Shown: one piece after another, positions 13,691 to 58,500 of the stretch
How positions within the stretch are numbered: position 1 is the first letter of the stretch
How the letters are laid out: each line of letters begins with the position of its first letter
Source: Oculina patagonica
Taxonomy: Eukaryota
Assembly: GCF_052425735.1 (NCBI RefSeq)
Contig: NC_135765.1
Coordinates: 32,116,001 to 32,180,000 of the forward strand
Length of the DNA: 64,000 nucleotides
Direction: 5' to 3'
Made by a program: the position numbers and the translations under genes
Notes under the pieces: model-generated
Told to the model about the DNA's origin: nothing
The model's input: only the letters and a program-made list of their open reading frames with translations
Database searches by the model: none

Positions 13691-16200
13691 CCTACGAGTT
13701 TAAGGTGTGTTGTTACAGTTCGTATTGTACGTTTCAGTCGACTGAGGTGATTAGTTTGTCTTCTTCGTAGCTTTAACCTTCACTGCCACGCATTCGCTTC
13801 GCGATGACCAAAATGATTACGACTTTGAAGGAAGCTAGTTAGTAGATTCATCAACGTTTTGACTCAGAATGCGCAAAGAACTGTAGTTTTCACGGGAGCC
13901 CTCTTGAATTTTAAATCCGACATGTTTTATAAGTTCTATGTGAGACTAGCCGGATAGGCTGTCTCGTGCCGGTCCCTCTACTGCACAGAGGCTTCCAGGA
14001 TAAATCTAATATGCGTTTTAAGAATCTCGAGGCCTTTTCTAAAGGACGTGTTGTTACTAGTTTAATAGACTGTAGCTTCTAAGCACGGTCAGTTTGCGTC
14101 GACGATTGATAAAAAAAGCTACAGACGATTGATAATAAAAAGCTGCTTCTCGGATAAGGACGATAAACCGTAGGCCTCGTCTCCTGCATCTTCAGTGTTA
14201 TGGTCAGCAGGGGACGTAAAAGAACTCACAAGCTTATCGTAAAGAGTAGGGCATGGAGCTCCCGGTGTTGTGGTCTGGTCTTTGCCCGTTGTATTGTGCT
14301 TACTGTGAATGCTCGGAGATTAGCTGTATAAGCTACTCTACAAATCCGAGGGTAAAGAAAAATGATGATGATAATGATGATGATAATGATGCACAAGAAA
14401 GCTTAAACAGGTTCTTAACGTTCTACTTTAACCCTGGGTTCTGAAAAAGAAAGTTCTACTTTGCGAGACTCAATTACAAAGCAGTAATTAATTCCTAGCA
14501 AACATATAAACAATCGTATTAACACGACAATAAAATCAACACAATTCAATCATCATAAACTTTCGTATAGTACAAGAATTGCATTTTCCCAGAGCCGCTC
14601 CTTAGCCATCGGGGCCTGTACAAGAGGTTTAAAGTTTCTTGTGCCAAAAGCTTTCTGGTTGAAAAAACTGTTAATCATTTCTGGAGATGCGGATGAGGAG
14701 GCCACTGGGCGATACTTGTGGGGCGCTCTTGCGGCCTTTTCTTATTGGACAAAAACATTATTGAGTATAGACAAAGTGTATATTTTCATAGCAATCTAAA
14801 CAATTAAAATGATTGTTCAATGTTTCCACTTTTCTTCAACGGCAAATTGTCTTTGCCTCTTGGCTCTTGGCGTGTGCTTGGGTTTTCTTCTTTTGATGAT
14901 TTTGTTTCCTCAGGGCAGTACAGTGGAGCTACAATAAGTGACACAAGTGTTGACAATGTCATTTTTACCCCTTTAATTGCAATGCAATATTTTTCGTCCC
15001 CTTACCCCTACTTCTTCCCAGCCCCTCCCCCCACATCAATGTTGAGTTGCTACAATCAAACAACATTGGATGGAGGGAAGGGGGCATTTTGTTAAAGTGA
15101 AGATAAATATAAAAACTTGTGTTTTAAATACCATGAAATGTGTCAACTACTTTTTTCCAAGATTGTAGTCTCGTCATCAACAGGTTGTTCATCGAAACGG
15201 CCCACTGAAAGAATCTGCACATTTTTTATTACTCTTTTTGCAAATATTCAACTCTTAATGGAAGCAATGAGCAATTTGATAAAAACTGATGAGCTTTGGC
15301 AAATTGTAAAATCAGTCAACTGAGAATTAATTTTATGAATTTCTACCCAAATCGTCGGCAATTTATTAAAGTAAATTGTATTGTTTTGATAAAATATTAG
15401 AATGTATGAATGAACCGCTTGCAGAAATCTTAATGAACGATTTGAGTAAACAAAAAATGAAGAAATACATTATATAATATGGTTGAATATTTTTACAGAA
15501 CTTGATTTACCCAAAGTAACTAAAAATTTACGAAAAAAAAGCGGACTCAAACACTCGTTTATTTCACCACTGTTCACAAATGATTGTACCTGCATCATCA
15601 GGGGTTCTATCTTGGGTATTTGAGGGGAAAAAGTTCCCTCCCAAAAGTATTGCTATCATTAAATTACAGTATATAAGTAACTATATCGGGTCAGAACGTG
15701 ATCACGCCTAAAAAAAATAAAAATAAAATACCACTGTAACATTTCTAAAAATTGTGTCTTAAAATGCACCAGATTGCATCTCAGCGCATATTCATTTCAA
15801 AACATTTGCACCCCCTAGGAAGCTCCTGGCCTTTGGCCATTCAGGACTTCTTCCCCAAACGATAAATCCTAGATATAACCCTGATCATTTGATCACATAC
15901 ATTGCTCGAATGAACTGATAACTTGAGTTTACATCTTTTAATTCATCAGTCACTAAACATTGGTGAGATCCAATTTTTTCAGCAATCCATTATTTTTTTT
16001 ATTCATGCAAGTCTTTATCACACATTCTACTATATATATTTTAACTAAAAAAATTAAGGCTTCACTACACTGCTATTGTTTTTGAAACCTGTTTGTTTAT
16101 TTTACAACCCGAAGCGATGAATAAAGAACATTGTCAGTTCTTTGTGATGAAATAAATTACCACTTTTCTGTTACCAAAAATAGAATTAGATTCCCACGCG

Positions 16201-16729
16201 TAGGCTTTTATAGATTGTGCTAGCATAATTTTTGGCATAATTGGAGCTAAAAAGCATAATTTGTGAAACGAGCACTGCCACGGCATAATTAGCAATTTTT
16301 AGCACGTTTTGGAGCATAAATTCATAAAATGTAGTAGATATGGTGTACTTTCTACAGAAATAAATGAAATTTAGGTAGTTTGTTCTTGCAATGCGTGTTT
16401 TAGCTATACAATTGTGATTGTTAAGTCGTTGGAGGCATTTTACAAACGGTTTAGAGATGCGAGCAGCTAATTTGGACAGCTGACGGCCGTGATAAACTGC
16501 CATAAACACAAATAAATTTACAACAACAGTTTATTTAAAAAACATCCTAATTTGGTGTCGTTATTGCGCACCTCTATGTATAGAATCTACGTCATTTTGT
16601 GAGCATAATTTCGGAAATCAGAAGCATAATTTGGGAATTCTGGCATAATTTTTGCATAATTTGGCAAAATTTTGAGCACTGCTAGTAGCATAATATGCCA
16701 CTTTTAGGAGCACAATCTATAAAAGCCTA
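16201..16729. mobile_element. hAT-type MITE
   Basis: TIR taggcttttatagattgtgc / gcacaatctataaaagccta; 8-bp TSD cccacgcg; internal gcataat repeats. Confidence 0.85.
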
Positions 16730-16915: not shown

Positions 16916-17501
16916 AGTTTTTGAAGAGTGATTATAAATTTATTTCGATGATTTTGTAACTATTATTAAAAATTTGTTTTATGACTTTAAACTTTTATTT
17001 TATGGCACTTACCACTCTGATGAGTGAGAACGTTGATTAACGTACGTTTTAGAGGTCAAATGACCGAGTTAAAAAAACACGATCGAAATCAATTGAATTC
17101 AGTTCAGAGAAGGTCTGTTAAGTCCAAGATACAGGAATTTACAGTCTCAAAATAAATGATATCATCACATTTATTAAAAGCTAGCAATGGTATATGGCAA
17201 TTTCTGCGTTTTGATTGGTTAACAGGCAATGGTATATAATAACATTCACCACAAATTGGTAGCCGATACGCGTCAACGAAAACAGCTGGGGAGCTCAAAT
17301 ATTCCAATTCCTTTGGGCTTTTTTTAACTCGCGCTTGTTGAATATCCAACGCGCGCTCGTGGAATAATTGTTTTAAAAGTATTCAACTGTCAGAACTCTA
17401 CGTGAATAAAGGTCAAAAGTTATTAAAATCTATAGTAAGAATCATTTGTCTTCGTCAAAAAATTCGCTGAGATCGATCGAGTCGTTCGACTCGTCGGATT
17501 C

Positions 17502-18080
17502 CTATGTTTCTTCCAGCTCTTCGTACTTGAAGGCCATGTAGATAACGTACCCAGCAGACAATCCGTTTTGCAAATTTCCTGGATACAACGATGTGTTTGC
17601 CAACCGTTGATCACACTCCTCATAGGCGAAGTGAGATATTAGGGTATTTTCCAGAGCAAGGACGTACAGCTGTTGGTCCCAAACGTGTTTGTTGCAATCA
17701 TCTTTGAGCATACCACGGGTCACAGCACCTAAAACAACCAAACCATCATATCCTCTGTCTTTGTATTCTTCGTTCCAGCGTTTGCTTATACCGCCTAGCC
17801 TCCATGTATCTACATTGGTCGGGTTGAATATTTTACGCGTTCTTTCTACCGCGTACGTTTTCCCGATACAGAAAAGTTCGATTGCTCTTTCGGATTGCAA
17901 TTCCAAGGAATCTATTGTATCTTTTATTTTAGTGATCAGTGCATCTATTCGTTCCCGCGTTGTTTTGTTACGGAGATCAACCACGTTAAAAGAATAGTTC
18001 TTAACTATCCCCTTGCATAGTTCGTCAAAACTTGTACCACCTTGCGATGAACCTGTCGAGACAGACGCTGATTCAGCCAT
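17502..18080 (-). CDS. Intronless 192-aa uncharacterised protein, possible GIY-YIG-like nuclease fold
   Basis: Long uninterrupted ORF with normal composition in AT-rich DNA; motifs FCIGKT, RWNEEY, LALENTLI, RLAN and C-terminal YVIYMAF. Confidence 0.72.
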   Translation of the reverse strand: MAESASVSTGSSQGGTSFDELCKGIVKNYSFNVVDLRNKTTRERIDALITKIKDTIDSLELQSERAIELFCIGKTYAVERTRKIFNPTNVDTWRLGGISKRWNEEYKDRGYDGLVVLGAVTRGMLKDDCNKHVWDQQLYVLALENTLISHFAYEECDQRLANTSLYPGNLQNGLSAGYVIYMAFKYEELEET

Positions 18081-20347
18081 AGTAAATTGACGCTACCTTC
18101 AGAAAGAGACGGAACAGATCAGTGTTGCGATGTTCGTTCGTCCACCTTGCTCAATGCGAAAATGAAATAAAATACTTCTGAAAAGGGAAGTTAATTTGTT
18201 CCATTGGCGTCCATTGTCTCTGGGCTGTTGATGTCGTAGAACAGAGTTTGCGTATCGAAACTTTTCTAGCAATGAACCGACAGCGCTTACATGCACATTT
18301 ATAACGGTCACGCGAAGTTAATCTTGCAACACTCTCAAATTTCAATTAAACTTCTAGAAATTGACGTAGGTATGCAATCTATTGTTTCCCACGTGAATAG
18401 TATATATTTTTGAATGTTTGTTATTAATTCACCATGGATATGTGAAATGACCGTATCTTGTCAAACAGTTCTCGTTTATATTATCTGAACAGAAAAAAGC
18501 ATTGACGCTAATCCAGCCGTGACAACTGTCAACACCATTTGAATGGTATGCGTGAGTCATGTGCTGTTCTTCACAAATAAAAAATGGATTCATTTTGGGG
18601 CCATTCATAAAGACCCTGAAAGAAAGCAAAAATATCTTAAACGTGCCATGATTATACGTGATGAATAGGTTTTTTGACAGCTAATAAATATAAATAGTTC
18701 AAACTTTTGGGTTGTTAATCCTTTATGGTAATAACATTCAGTCTGAGCACTAAAGGAGCTTATCAGAAGTTCATAAGCTTCTGATATCACGCATTGTACA
18801 TGATGATATGATAACAAGAACTGTTCACTTGTATACGTAGAAGGGGGTCGTAGAACAATGGAATACATACCTAATCACCATAACAAACGACCATGTTGAA
18901 AATAGACTTTGTGTTTACCTCAAGAGCTTGAAATTATTAGGTATGTGTTGGCGTCACACACTTTCTCGAGGGTCTATTAAAGGGGGGTCGTACATTCAGC
19001 AAACCGCCATATTTTGTTCTTCCTAGACCGCAAACTGCTTTGGCTTTGATTAATAAACGGCATGCAATACATGCTGAAGCGATGACGTTTCACAAGGGGT
19101 TAAAAATACATTTTCTTCGTAGATTTGCTCAATTGTACAACTGCAGTAATATTTTATATTTTATTTTTTTCTTGATTTCCCTATGTTGTCTCGACAAAGA
19201 TTACGTTATATTATAGCGTGACTTGCGACAAACGACATACGATACGCGGGAGCTAGCTTTTAAGCTGCGAGAAAGGTCAAACGGTCTCTCAGTCTAAGAA
19301 CTAGAAATCTCTGTCTACTAAATCTAATAGATTCCATCACATAAAATTTAGTCTCTTTCGTTTATACATTGTAGGGTCCCATTCTTACTGCACGGGAGTA
19401 TCTTGCTTTTGTGTTCTACGCGGCGATTTCTTGTTATTAAGTTAAACTTGATTTCTGTTCGATTGAGCTAAACGGATCCGGTCGATCGGGTGCCTGCATT
19501 AAAGCGATGACGTCATCAGTTGCACGTCATCGCTTAAAAATATAACACAAACAGCGGTGATAAACATTATGAAAAATCGCATTTTTATAAACTTGACGTT
19601 TCGTATGGTAAGCTACATACATTTTCAAAAGTATGACCGTTACAATTTTTGGCAACTATTTATATATTGTTATGAAAGGGGTCTGGAACCAAGACCGAGA
19701 CAATTGATCTACAGCAGTAACTTAACTTATCGTTTAGTTTTGCAGACTGGGCCAAATCGTACAAACATAACAATGAATTAATGTGCTCTTTTGATGTTAG
19801 TTCTCTTTTTACAAATGTGCCACTTGATGAAACAATACATATTTGTTTAGAAAAATTGTATTCTCTTCCTGATCCACCGACATTGCCCCGTCCTGTTCTG
19901 CAGAAATTGTTGGAGTTCGCCACTTAGAAGAGCCATTTCCTCTTTGATGGCCAGTATTACGACCAAATTGATGGTGTAGCCATGGGTTCGCCTTTGGGCC
20001 CAGTTTTGGCTAACATCTTCATGTGCCACTTTGAGGAAAAGTGGGTTTTGAACGCCAGAGTTCGTCCTTCTTCTTGGTATAGATATGTGGATGACACCTT
20101 CACCTTGTTTGACAGCAAAGACACTGCTAATGAGTTTTTGCGGTATCTAAACAGTAGGCACAACAGTATCAAGTTCACTTTTGAATTTGAACAAGACAAT
20201 GATATTACTTTTTTAAACATTCTTGTCAAACGTTGCCCCGACAACACTTTCATGACCTCTATCTACCGGAAGAAGACTTTCACCGGCCTCTACACCAAGT
20301 GGGATTCATTTACACCATGAAAATACAAAATTAATCTTATCCGCACA

Positions 20348-20655
20348 CCCGGGGGGGACTCCCATATGAAAGTGACGGGGATGCTCGTCGTCTCGCTTAG
20401 GGGTATAAATTTCGGACGTTGGGTCTCGCTTAGGGTGTTCTGGGGAAAATGGCAATATTTTTAGCTGTCAGGGTCTCGTTTAGGGTCGCACACGAAGAAA
20501 ACAACAAATATGAGTTCTTTTTTCCGAATTTTGGTATCTTATAGGGGTTTAAAATAGCTTTAGCCACGCCCAGATTGGTCTCTTTTAGGGGTTCTTTTAC
20601 AAATTTCCGACGAGCATCCCCGTCCCTTTAATATGGGAGTCCCCCCCCCCCGGGG
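20348..20655. mobile_element. hAT-type MITE nested in the Penelope RT
   Basis: TIRs cccgggggggactcccat/atgggagtcccc..ccgggg; 8-bp TSD tccgcaca at 20340-20347 and 20656-20663. Confidence 0.85.
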
Positions 20656-21430
20656 TCCGCACACTTACCTATCGTTGTTTCCGAATCTGTTCCTCTGCCT
20701 CATTATTACAATCCGCTCAGTATTAAAGATCTCAGGAAGCTCTTGCTGCAAAATGGTTACCCCCAAGGCATTATCACGTACAACGTTAACGATGTTTTGA
20801 ACAGACACAAAAACAAGCCAGACACCCCTGTTGCGACAGTTCCTAAAAAAGATATCATAATCCTGTTACCCTACTTAGGTCTTCCGAGCATCCAAATCAC
20901 TAAACGCCTTAAATCCTGTGTATCCAACTTCTACTCTTTTGTCAACCTTAAGATCATTTTTCAGAACACACGCCGCATCAAATCCTTCTTTCCGTACAAA
21001 GACCGCCTCAACCGTTCTCAACGATCTAAGGTCATCTACAAAGCTAGCTGCTGGGACTGTGACGATGTTTACATTGGGAAAACAAAACGACGATTACATG
21101 ACAGAAAAACTGAACACTTTAAGGCCCTCACTAAATGCGACCATCCATCAGCTATTGCTGATCACATAAAAGCCACAGGCCATAACATCAAATGGGATCA
21201 TTTTGAAATCCTTGCGTCAGGCAAAACTGACCTCCACTGCAAGATTAAAGAGACCTTATACATTCATGAACTACAACCTTCTTTAAATGCCAATGTCGGC
21301 AGTGAGAGGTTGTTACTTTATTAACCTAATGTAAATATTAAGTTACTGCTATAGGTCAATTGTCTCAGTCTCGGTTCCAGATCCCTTTCATAACAATATA
21401 TAAATAGTTGCCGAAAATTTTAACGGTCAT

Positions 21431-21472
21431 ACTTTTGAAAATGTATGTAGCTTAGCATACGAAACGTCAAGT
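21431..21472 (+). ncRNA. Minimal type-I hammerhead ribozyme variant (U3:A8) in the Penelope pseudo-LTR
   Basis: actt-TTGAAAA-t-gtatg(tagcttag)catac-GAAAC-GTC-aagt: stems I and II, a GAAAC core and a GUC cleavage triplet. Confidence 0.55.
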
Positions 21473-21547
21473 TTATAAAAATGCGATTTTTCATAATGTT
21501 TATCTTTCATAACACCTTTGGTGATGTGAGCTCCCTGGGTAAAGAAC

Positions 21548-55513: not shown

Positions 55514-58500
55514 TTAAATTTCATTGACCAGCGGTCGCATAGGAACGGTGGTGTTGGTGCTGGTTGCCATGACAGAAGGGCCAACAGCAGGTTGCAAAAT
55601 GACGGTCCCTTGGTTGTTAGGACGGGATTTGCAGCAGCAGCAGCAACAGCAGCACGCGATCACGATGATGACGAAAAGAATCGCCCCGCCAACCACAAGC
55701 CCTTTGCCGACATCGCCCATCTCATACCACCATGCAAAGATACCTAAACCAAAAAATCATTTTATAAGGTCAGTTTTAGTTGGAAAATTATATATCACCT
55801 CTAGCCTTGTAGCGGACAAGTTCTACTAGTATACACGGATCTAGAGTTTCAGGCTTCCGGTCCAAATTCAAAGGAAAAGTAAGCATCATTTAGTCAGGCC
55901 ATTGTTAAACATCGCAAAATACAATAGCCTGGCTTAATGAGTCTCGCCTTTCTTTTGAATTTGGACCGGAAGTCTGAAACTCTGGATCCGTGTATATATA
56001 CTTACCACAGGCGTTGGTATTAATGGGCAGATCTCCCTCCATCACTGTTGCCTTCACAGGATAACCCCCTTCTCCCAGAATATCGCCTCCAGCTAGGAGT
56101 TTCACCTGTAAAAAGACAACAAAAACTCTCAGGTTTTTTGCCCTCTACTTGTTTGGTAGTACAATAGCCTGCATAGCAGGCGTCTGTGTAGTTTTTAGCG
56201 CGCGCGCCTTTCGCGTTTCTCCCATACGCGCGCTAGAAACTAACGACGCCTGCCACGCAGGCTAGTAGTACAACGAAAAAAATTACGTCATCTGTGACGT
56301 TCATCGTGCAACTGCTGGCGCAATGTGTTCCAGGTCTTCAGACTGCTGCGCTTTTATGACGCCTTTAACAATAAATTAGTGTATAAGATTGAACAACAAC
56401 AACAACTTTATTTGCACCTTTTCTTTCAATTAAAATTAGCAAAACAATAAATAAAATAAATAGAGTAAAGTGCATGGCTGCCCAGAATAACCACGATTGG
56501 CTAACAAGATTGGGCAGCCATACTTAGTTTTTATTACAATAATTTATAAAAAGGTCAGGTATATTTAATATTTACATAGCAAACTATACAACACACAAAA
56601 ACAAAACTAAGTAGGCTTAAAGAAAAAATTAATGGAAAAAAAGATGAAAAATGACGTATTATAGTTATAAATATAAAATGTTCAGTTAATAGCTTGTTTT
56701 TTTTATATTTTTTCTTAAATTGTTTAAGTGACAGAAGCTTAATGTCATCACTGATAGCATTCCAGATTTTAGCGCCCTGATATCTAATATTAAAGATTCC
56801 ATAATTTGTTCTGGTTTTGGGTAAAGCATAAGTCATTCTAGAGGAAAATCTTGTATTGTAACCATGAGTTTCTTTTGCCGAAGTGAAAAAAACATCAAAA
56901 TAAGAAGGGAGAAGTTGGTTTTTAAATTTGTACATAAAAACAGCAATGTGAAAAGTTACTTCATCAAATAATTTGATAACATTTAGATCTTTGAAAAGTG
57001 GACTTGTATGTTCAGAAAAGCTAGAGAAAGTTATAATTCTAATGGCTTTTTTTTGTAATACAAAAAGAGGTTGCAGAGAAGTTTGATAAGTATTATCCCA
57101 AGCTATTAAACAATATGTTAAAAATGGATAAACAAGAGCATAATAAAGGTCCAGCAAGGTTTTACTGTTAAGATAATAGCGAAGTTTAGAAAGAATTCCT
57201 ATACTTCGTTTAATCTTTTTTGCAATGAAATTAATTTGACTTTTCCAGTTAAGACGCTTATATGAGCTCTCCCGTTCTTGTGTGTGTTACGGCTTATACG
57301 GTGTTCTGCAAAGTTTCCCCATTATAAAAATATAGCACAGAAGTCAGTAGGATTATTGAAAAATTCGTTTAGTCGCTCGGAACTTGGGAACCACTTTCCC
57401 GGCTCAAAAAGATGTCATAACTGTGTACTGATCAGTTGTGTCGTACACAAAGTACCAACCTTTAGATGTAGTTCGTCGCCGTTTGGAGTGAATCCGACTT
57501 GAACGTACACACCGGCAGAAACGAGACCATGCAAGGACGCGGTGAAGCCTGGCACTGCTACAATGTCGTCACTGGTGTAAGTATGGGACCACGTGATATA
57601 CAGATCAGGAACGTCCATTGAGGCGGTCACACTCACTGGATCATCACACTTGTTGACCTAACAGGCAATAAAATTACTATCACTTTTAGTCCAGTTTGAA
57701 AAGAGCTTATGATGAATGGTTGAGACCCGTTTTCTTTTCCTTTCTTGCTTTATTAGTTTGGAAATAGTTCTCTTACAACTGTTAACTGGGGCCGTAAAAT
57801 TGTGGCTAACTGTGTTCACTCAGTGGCGAGTACAAAAAATATCAACTGCTGTTTTGCCTTAACTCCAAATTCTTAGAACTAGTTTTAAACGACTGGTATT
57901 ACAGCCCGTGAGAAAAGTTAATCTCTCGAGATTAAGAATGAAAGGGTTAATGGCAAATACTGTTTGCTGGCGTAAAGCCTTCTTGGAAAACGAAAATAAA
58001 AGATGCATTTCACATGTGATGTCGAGGATAAAACTGTCGATTACAATTGAAATAACTATGACAAAAATATGTAAATAAGTTAAATACTATCGTATCCTTT
58101 AAGAACTAAGAATGAAACAATTCCAAAATCTTTTTATTGAAGAATGGTTCAGACATCTACAATGTTGATGTGATTACCTTCAGCGTAAGTGTGATAGGCT
58201 TGTCGACAAAATCCATCTTACACGTGATTTTGCTGCAATCTTCACTGATACTGCATCCGTCACCGAGGGACGCGTCGGGACACGACCCGTCAATTGTTAT
58301 AGAATGTTGATCATCGTAGACGTCGCCTAAAAAAAAGACAACACTTGATTGGCTGACAAGAAGATGCTTCATGGTTGAAGCATGTTGAGTACAGTTTCTT
58401 GGACAAAATGGTAAAGAAAAACCAAATCAAGTGAATACATATACCTAATATATAGCTCATGGTCATCCTTTTGACTTTGTCAGCCATAGAGAACTATCTT

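Follow-up and report, generated by a model that had tools for sequence, protein, structure and literature searches.

A single-copy intronless gene of the coral Oculina patagonica and the possible kinship of its protein family with the GIY-YIG nuclease fold

The gene and its locus

The DNA analysed in this study was a stretch of 64,000 nucleotides from the coral Oculina patagonica (NCBI RefSeq assembly GCF_052425735.1, contig NC_135765.1, positions 32,116,001 to 32,180,000 of the forward strand), hereafter the window, in which positions are counted from the first letter. Its minus strand carries at 17502-18080 an intact open reading frame (ORF) that runs uninterrupted from ATG to stop, and the encoded domain belongs to a large animal family that may be distantly related to the GIY-YIG nucleases. 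The original prediction, made from the sequence alone, had described this intronless ORF as a small nuclease-like effector with a circularly permuted GIY-YIG motif set, possibly acquired from a bacterium, a virus or a transposable element, in a putative immune locus. That prediction was partly supported: the observation was mostly right, and in the interpretation the GIY-YIG likeness held, while permutation, transfer and the immune setting did not. The gene and the conserved blocks upstream of it are as follows.

17502 to 18080, minus strand: single-exon coding sequence of 192 amino acids plus stop.
18267 to 18967, no strand assigned: upstream non-coding blocks, 71-74% conserved with the orthologous locus of another coral (blastn of that coral's contig against the window).

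A word-indexed search returned 45 full-length homologues of the 192-amino-acid protein at 49-74% identity, none of them named and none with a Pfam domain. The coral homologues that were traced came from metagenome contigs of coral holobionts, where prokaryote-style gene prediction called each of them as a single unbroken ORF. In the 529-Mb genome the gene was present once, by both the protein search and the family profile search. On the orthologous contig of the other coral, identity across the gene was 74% in protein and 81% in DNA, and the flank upstream of the gene was colinear with that contig out to at least 22.7 kb of the window by blastn, which indicated an orthologous host locus and not a mobile copy. 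The window has the composition of AT-rich animal DNA (GC 0.31-0.42), and the GC content of the gene matches that of its surroundings. Ratios of nonsynonymous to synonymous substitution (dN/dS) were 0.14-0.35 for the more distant pairs, in which dS was saturated. Homologues in such number put the ORF well outside what chance would give, and we consider it very probable that it is a real gene.

Predicted fold and conserved residues

The full-length protein was modelled with AlphaFold2 from 24 homologues, with a predicted local distance difference test score (pLDDT) of 85 and a predicted template modelling score of 0.83. A second model, of the core alone (residues 64-190), drew on 100 homologues and reached a pLDDT of 94.9. 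Residue counts below refer to an alignment of 127 diverse family members, of which 24 sequences form the coral subset. In the full model the elements follow one another as strand 1, helix A, strand 2, helix B, strand 3, helix C and strand 4, with boundaries taken from the model.

17979 to 17999, minus strand: strand 1, residues 28-34 (NYSFNVV), with Tyr29; candidate equivalent of the GIY strand.
17892 to 17960, minus strand: helix A, residues 41-63, inserted between strands 1 and 2; a helix-rich stretch in all aligned members.
17844 to 17882, minus strand: strand 2, residues 67-79, with F-C-I-G-K-T; the family consensus is F-Y-I-G-K-T (YIG motif).
17760 to 17795, minus strand: helix B, residues 96-107, with Arg101; R-x3-H in the wider family, R-x4-Y (Tyr106) in corals.
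17718 to 17744, minus strand: strand 3, residues 113-121 (GLVVLGAVT); Gly113 in 122/127.
17619 to 17675, minus strand: helix C, residues 136-154, with Glu144 in Y-x-L-A-L-E-x-x-L-I, a candidate metal-binding Glu; Glu144 in 122/127.
17595 to 17612, minus strand: loop D157-x-R159-L-x-N162, with a candidate GIY-YIG Asn; Asp157 in 118/127, Arg159 in 117/127, Asn162 in 125/127.
17523 to 17552, minus strand: strand 4 at the C-terminus, residues 177-186 (GYVIYMAFKY), with Tyr181; Tyr181 in 127/127.

The strings on which the original prediction rested were all present: F70-C-I-G-K-T75, R101-W102, Y106, L143-E144, L147-I148, L160-A-N162 and G177-Y-V-I-Y-M-A-F184. Their likeness to a GIY-YIG motif set is conserved throughout the family, in the order of a strand-1 Tyr, Y-I-G-K-T on strand 2, R-x3-H on the next helix, a Glu on the helix that follows strand 3, and the Asn loop, with Asn162 lying 18 residues past Glu144. 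Position 71, that of the YIG tyrosine, was Tyr in 91 of the 127 members, Thr in 15, Cys in 10 and Val in 7; the positions that follow were more uniform (Ile72 119/127, Gly73 127/127, Lys74 123/127). Trp93 was found in 120/127 and Arg101 in 117/127, and four residues beyond Arg101, at position 105, 87 of 127 had His and 14 had Tyr. Only Gly73 and Tyr181 were invariant in the alignment. The conserved residues of the family thus read like the classical GIY-YIG catalytic set, in the classical order and on matching types of element.

The N-terminal GIY strand had been thought missing, with the C-terminal G-Y-V-I-Y segment supplying it by circular permutation. The model placed a strand at residues 28-34, and its Tyr29 was kept in 118 of 127 members (93%), although this strand, separated from strand 2 by the 23-residue helix, was aligned to the GIY strand by no tool. 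With an N-terminal strand bearing a conserved Tyr, and an inserted helix before the YIG strand, circular permutation is not needed. Where small T5orf172-like models were matched, the reported alignment was one continuous, colinear stretch that began at residue 14 or 29 and reached 186-187. In T5orf172 proteins, too, the Glu helix and Asn are followed by a conserved aromatic segment (EWF/EFF) that closes the domain. The predicted structure would be read more simply as a first hairpin that has taken up an extra helix, together with a terminal strand of T5orf172 type.

The replacement of the YIG tyrosine by cysteine, which had been suggested to inactivate the protein, is real (Cys71) and is not a private lesion: it is the state of the coral clade, while the wider family keeps Tyr. 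Among the 24 coral sequences position 71 was Cys in 18, Ile in 5 and Tyr in 1, and the position of the helix-B His was Lys or Thr in 20. If the GIY-YIG assignment is right, the family would offer a natural case of active-site rewiring, with Tyr in most animals and Cys in corals. Arg101, Lys74 and Tyr106 were present in 24/24, and Glu144 and Asn162 in all 23 sequences that cover them, the 24th being gapped there. As Arg101, Lys74, Glu144 and Asn162 are unchanged across the coral sequences, the site appears to be still under selection.

An unnamed animal family

An exhaustive search with the family profile returned 704 cluster representatives at E <= 1e-3, 149 of them at E <= 1e-30. The domain usually stands first in the protein: of 180 full-length domain matches, 171 begin no later than residue 60. 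Many members are 300-980 amino acids long with extended tails rich in Ser, Thr and Pro. A few end in C2H2 zinc fingers or have a TAFH domain; in six the family domain itself is present as two or three tandem copies. Two RefSeq entries of the brittle star Amphiura filiformis, both annotated as "uncharacterized protein" (XP_072030210.1 and XP_072030212.1), belong to the family; one of the two consists of one chromosomal exon of 2,337 bases. Their accession numbers are nearly adjacent, and both are recorded on the same contig of 80,523,477 bases (CM076859.1, ca. 8.72 Mb). One of the pair has terminal C2H2 zinc fingers and the other a TAFH domain, which indicated that the N-terminal domain has been joined to different DNA or transcription modules. 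Cluster matches in the AlphaFold database (AFDB) included an entry labelled salmon louse, and others whose accessions are probably those of Stylophora and Mytilus.

A dense array was present on a 431-kb contig of another organism (ctg172982, ENA ERZ25072283), where 16 family genes lie head-to-tail on one strand within ca. 31 kb (ca. 148-179 kb of the contig). These genes are intronless, their C-terminal tails vary in length, two are apparently frameshifted, and at least four represent distinct clusters at 50% identity.

Established collections held little that matched. A Pfam scan of the 127 aligned members gave no consistent family, and a PHROGs scan likewise gave none, with phrog_1382 (function unknown) in 9 of the 127 at a best E of 7e-4. 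PADLOC returned only scattered single matches for the 192-amino-acid protein and the 127 members, sequence searches of the PDB yielded nothing meaningful whether the query was the protein or the profile, PF10544 was absent from a search of the coral genome, and a literature search found no paper on the family. The 192-amino-acid product is a member of a large, unnamed animal family that lacks a Pfam model and has a domain of ca. 190 residues.

This distribution bears on the proposal of recent horizontal transfer or of a viral or mobile-element origin, for which a patchy pattern of animal and bacterial relatives would have spoken. The family is represented in animals from corals to a brittle star, and pattern searching with tblastn, a method of limited reach, recovered no relative from 185,579 prokaryote genomes or IMG/VR. 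That the gene was recently acquired from bacteria or viruses, or belongs to a mobile element, would fit its intronless ORF, the Penelope element 1.5 kb away, the giant-virus proteins among its nearest viral structure matches and the dense same-strand array of 16 copies in another organism. We nevertheless regard such an origin as highly improbable: the gene is single-copy with the GC content of its surroundings, the other coral keeps the upstream flank without the Penelope insertion, and the brittle-star members are ordinary predicted genes on a chromosome.

The Penelope-like fragment itself occupies 19500-21500 of the window, with one ORF for a reverse transcriptase (19982-20320) and one for a GIY-YIG endonuclease (20632-21321). 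The Penelope and other repeat insertions at ca. 19.5-21.5 kb are absent from the orthologous locus of the other coral, which indicated that Penelope was inserted after the two coral species split. As had been claimed, the 192-amino-acid protein and the neighbouring Penelope ORF are unrelated apart from a shared Y-I-G-K-T pentapeptide (hhalign, 15 columns, probability 2.6%); unlike the element, our gene has no reverse transcriptase and is single-copy at a conserved locus.

Relationship to the GIY-YIG superfamily

For profile comparison, alignments of T5orf172, YhbQ-type GIY-YIG and UvrC N-terminal domains were built from bacterial genomes and compared with the family by hhalign. With the family profile untrimmed, matches were weak (E 0.008-0.09) and covered the Glu helix alone (E 0.008-0.015). 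A control comparison of YhbQ with UvrC, both of them true PF01541 groups, did not reach a better score (probability 5.3%), which indicated that the untrimmed test has little power. When helix A and two loops were excised as the model defines them, the trimmed core matched the UvrC N-domain over 58-59 columns (probability 57%, E 1e-4) and a merged T5orf172, YhbQ and UvrC profile at a probability of 64-67% (E 5e-5), against E 0.13-0.3 for reversed templates and 0.026 for the best of 40 column shuffles. In these alignments the family Y-I-G-K pairs with Y-V-G-K of UvrC, and Glu144 falls on the catalytic-Glu helix E-A-L-L-L-E-x-x-L-I. Trimmed or not, the comparisons also set Glu144 against the Glu that is conserved in T5orf172, and at low stringency the Arg159/Asn162 segment pairs with the Arg...Asn segment of T5orf172. 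As the trimmed match is one of 25 comparisons, it provides moderate support only.

Searches with predicted structures pointed in the same direction. In the ESM Atlas the best shape match was a bacterial cluster of 113 amino acids annotated as PF10544 T5orf172 (22%) and PF13455 MUG113 (14%), with a template modelling score (TM) of 0.82 by the hit; the full model aligned to it over 112 residues at 2.2 Å and the core alone over 82 residues at 2.0 Å. The core also found a SegE_GIY-YIG cluster at TM 0.46. Among AFDB clusters the matches included small bacterial proteins (TM 0.64-0.81 by the hit) and a "GIY-YIG domain-containing protein" at E 0.025. BFVD gave as its two best entries a "GIY-YIG domain-containing protein" of Yasminevirus (E 1.9e-3) and a protein of Klosneuvirus (E 6e-3), and the neighbours in language-model space included PF01541 and PF10544 clusters at 0.91-0.93.

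Solved structures were searched in a library of 48,161 chains, for which the stated noise level of the tool is a typical best Z of 7-8. With the core model the catalytic domain of I-TevI (1ln0_A) ranked fifth (Z 3.4, 2.9 Å over 62 residues, 16% identity) and the N-domain of AtGRXS16 (2lwf) ranked 13th (Z 3.0, 3.2 Å over 68 residues, 18% identity). The AtGRXS16 N-domain is listed as an atypical GIY-YIG domain (PMC8263062). The chance of at least two GIY-YIG chains among the top 13 would be 3e-6 to 5e-5, given an estimated 10-40 such chains in the library.

Several observations weigh against a GIY-YIG relationship. Neither the full nor the core model matched any solved structure at Z 5, and no GIY-YIG chain was among the top 50 for the full model. 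In the structure search proposed with the original prediction, Foldseek against the PDB and Swiss-Prot models gave nothing at E <= 0.001, while the predicted-structure neighbours did include GIY-YIG and T5orf172 clusters. The GIY-YIG matches of the core tie in Z with dodecin-like and ferredoxin-like folds. In the model, strand 2 runs on past G-K with no direct turn into the Arg helix, and a 16-residue loop precedes helix B; in hhalign, Arg101 sits one helical turn (four positions) off the Arg of UvrC. The untrimmed profile scores are weak, and the better score came only after the insertions had been excised. No GIY-YIG-clan Pfam model (PF01541, PF10544, PF13455, PF19239 or PF19835) matched any of the 127 members at E <= 1, and no Pfam model at all matched the 192-amino-acid protein at E <= 10; the Penelope endonuclease ORF of the window likewise had no Pfam match at E <= 0.01. 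Two of the six classical catalytic positions are substituted in the coral protein. The dN/dS against the nearest orthologue was 0.65 (dS 0.26), a value from one pair that is not significantly below 1 (p = 0.08).

The same matches raise the alternative that the domain is an alpha/beta sandwich of its own, unrelated to GIY-YIG, with convergent motifs and possibly a STING-like role in binding a small ligand or nucleotide. The best solved matches of the full model were five bacterial STING entries (Z 3.6-4.6 over 103-118 residues, the best chains at Z 4.0-4.6) and Rid/YjgF proteins (Z 3.6-3.8), which, with the absence of GIY-YIG chains and Pfam matches and the non-canonical geometry of strand 2, would suit such a fold. 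These scores lie below the noise level of the tool, however, at 4-10% identity and 4-5 Å root-mean-square deviation. With the core model STING falls to Z 2.6, while the two GIY-YIG structures enter the top 13 with the lowest deviation and the highest identity. GIY-YIG or T5orf172 emerged from five independent kinds of search, whose results named no other family. An unrelated fold seemed fairly improbable to us, and the cyclic-dinucleotide-binding domain of STING (deviation 4.2-5.1 Å) was rejected as a specific candidate.

For a GIY-YIG relationship, then, no single line is strong and the several weak lines agree, placing the core near the superfamily. An origin of the family within it is probable in our judgement. 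Should this assignment fail, the family would still represent a confidently predicted domain (pLDDT 85-95) with no clear match among solved structures.

Comparison with known systems placed the family closest to T5orf172 (PF10544) and MUG113 (PF13455), its best predicted-structure neighbours; T5orf172 is an accepted member of the GIY-YIG superfamily. Both have a Glu-x-x-x-His helix followed by Arg...Asn and a terminal aromatic segment, and in both the position of the YIG tyrosine is occupied by another residue, Lys in T5orf172 and Cys in corals. They differ in that no hidden Markov model match links them (untrimmed profile E only 0.015), in the 23-residue helix between strands 1 and 2 and the Thr-Trp loop of this family, and in its being animal and not phage or bacterial. 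With UvrC-N and I-TevI (PF01541) the family shares Y-[IV]-G-K, an Arg-bearing helix, a Glu helix of the form A-L-x-L-E-x-x-L-I and an Asn 12-18 residues later, whereas its domain is nearly twice as large, with insertions and an extra C-terminal strand, the Z is low and the Arg register is off by one turn.

SLX1 and ANKLE1 are the known cellular GIY-YIG nucleases of animals, encoded by nuclear genes in which the domain is joined to other modules. Our family resembles them in being animal genes with a putative GIY-YIG-type domain and further modules, and its N-terminal domain position recalls that of SLX1. It differs in its partners (disordered tails, C2H2, TAFH), in being intronless and in its tandem expansion in some lineages. 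No sequence match to either turned up, although neither was compared directly.

Proposed mechanism and significance

The best explanation of these findings, to which we give an even chance, is that 17502-18080 is a functional, single-copy, intronless coral gene whose domain core is a distant, remodelled relative of the GIY-YIG fold, closest to the T5orf172/MUG113 branch. The GIY-YIG-derived core would comprise strand 2, helix B, strand 3, helix C and the Asn loop, with three putative additions: the long helix between the first two strands, the Thr-Trp loop and the C-terminal strand. Canonical GIY-YIG domains have no helix between their first two strands.

GIY-YIG enzymes cut with one metal ion held by a Glu, and with Arg and Tyr at the scissile phosphate. 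By analogy, the protein would attach to nucleic acid and cleave it at a phosphodiester bond, using a single divalent metal ion on Glu144; the phosphate would be stabilised by Arg101 and Lys74, Asn162 would support the site, and the base would be a tyrosine. As the coral protein has Cys71 in place of the YIG tyrosine and lacks the His, it must either use a non-canonical chemistry or have lost catalysis. If it is active, the role of the base would have to fall to Tyr29, Tyr106 or Tyr181. The T5orf172-domain protein Gp88 of phage ICP1 was described as an origin-directed nuclease (PMC8263062). The coral protein might still be an active nuclease, with the balance of our judgement slightly against it.

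The domain could instead be GIY-YIG-derived and catalytically dead, a pseudo-nuclease that has kept its surface for binding nucleic acid or for regulation. The substitutions in corals favour this, with Cys or Ile for the YIG Tyr in 23 of 24 and Lys or Thr for the helix His in most, as does the fairly high dN/dS against the nearest orthologue; the disordered tails, C2H2 and TAFH modules of the wider family would suit roles in chromatin or transcription. The metal ligand is usually the first loss in dead enzymes, however, and Glu144 is kept in every coral sequence that covers it, as are Arg101, Lys74, Tyr106 and Asn162, while the conserved Tyr29, Tyr106 and Tyr181 could assume the role of the base. 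We judged a dead module to be improbable, to about the same degree as an unrelated fold.

On the wider scale, animals may have in this family one more lineage of GIY-YIG-type nucleases, widespread among them and additional to SLX1, ANKLE1 and the Penelope endonuclease: intronless, usually N-terminal to disordered tails or zinc fingers, in dense tandem arrays in some animals, and in stony corals retained as a single copy whose active site has been rewired (Cys for the YIG Tyr). This proposal is tentative and in our view on the unlikely side. To our knowledge only a few GIY-YIG nuclease families occur in animals. If the GIY-YIG assignment is true, a widespread, unstudied family of DNA-cutting or DNA-binding proteins would be added; if the family is a nuclease lineage, its arrays and fast evolution would fit a role in genome defence or conflict.

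Expression and the surroundings of the gene

Two further features overlap or adjoin the coding sequence.

17343 to 18273, minus strand: span matched without difference or gap by contigs of two same-species runs, with the library kind only guessed as RNA; the end at 17343 is a repeat boundary.
18158 to 18167, plus strand: IRF-like core GAAAATGAAA, 78 bases upstream of the ATG.

The span 17343-18273 may be an unspliced transcript of ca. 0.93 kb; 18339-18839, by comparison, was covered in none of four runs. Transcription of the gene is plausible and no more than that, since the library type was a guess, the end at 17343 falls on a repeat boundary, and a definite coral metatranscriptome gave no cover of the ORF.

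The IRF-like core stood exactly where the original prediction had placed it, and as evidence of regulation it proved weak: in the nearest orthologue the site reads GACAATGAAA, with one GAAA half gone. The window contains 17 copies of the motif GAAANNGAAA, where 8.5 would be expected; none of 100 shuffles reached 17. This excess is modest, window-wide and not specific to the gene. With the motif frequent across the window and the site changed in the nearest orthologue, reading it as an IRF site is unsupported. The proposed immune locus found no evidence either: nine other long open frames of the window were scanned without a Pfam match, the neighbouring multi-exon genes not having been reconstructed. 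The longest open frame of the window (56558-57286, minus strand, 243 codons) had no Pfam match at E <= 0.01.

Two putative insertions lie beyond the 3' end of the gene. A 302-base element at 17079-17380 stands just 3' of it; a contig of a related species joins 17078 to 17381, and the bin 17170-17336 beside this element had contig depth in the thousands. It is probably an insertion like a short interspersed nuclear element or a miniature inverted-repeat transposable element. Farther on, the 537 bases at 16193-16729 are absent from one same-species contig and one related-species contig, and 11 bases fit both sides of the joint; the pattern suggests a transposable element whose insertion is polymorphic and flanked by a target-site duplication.

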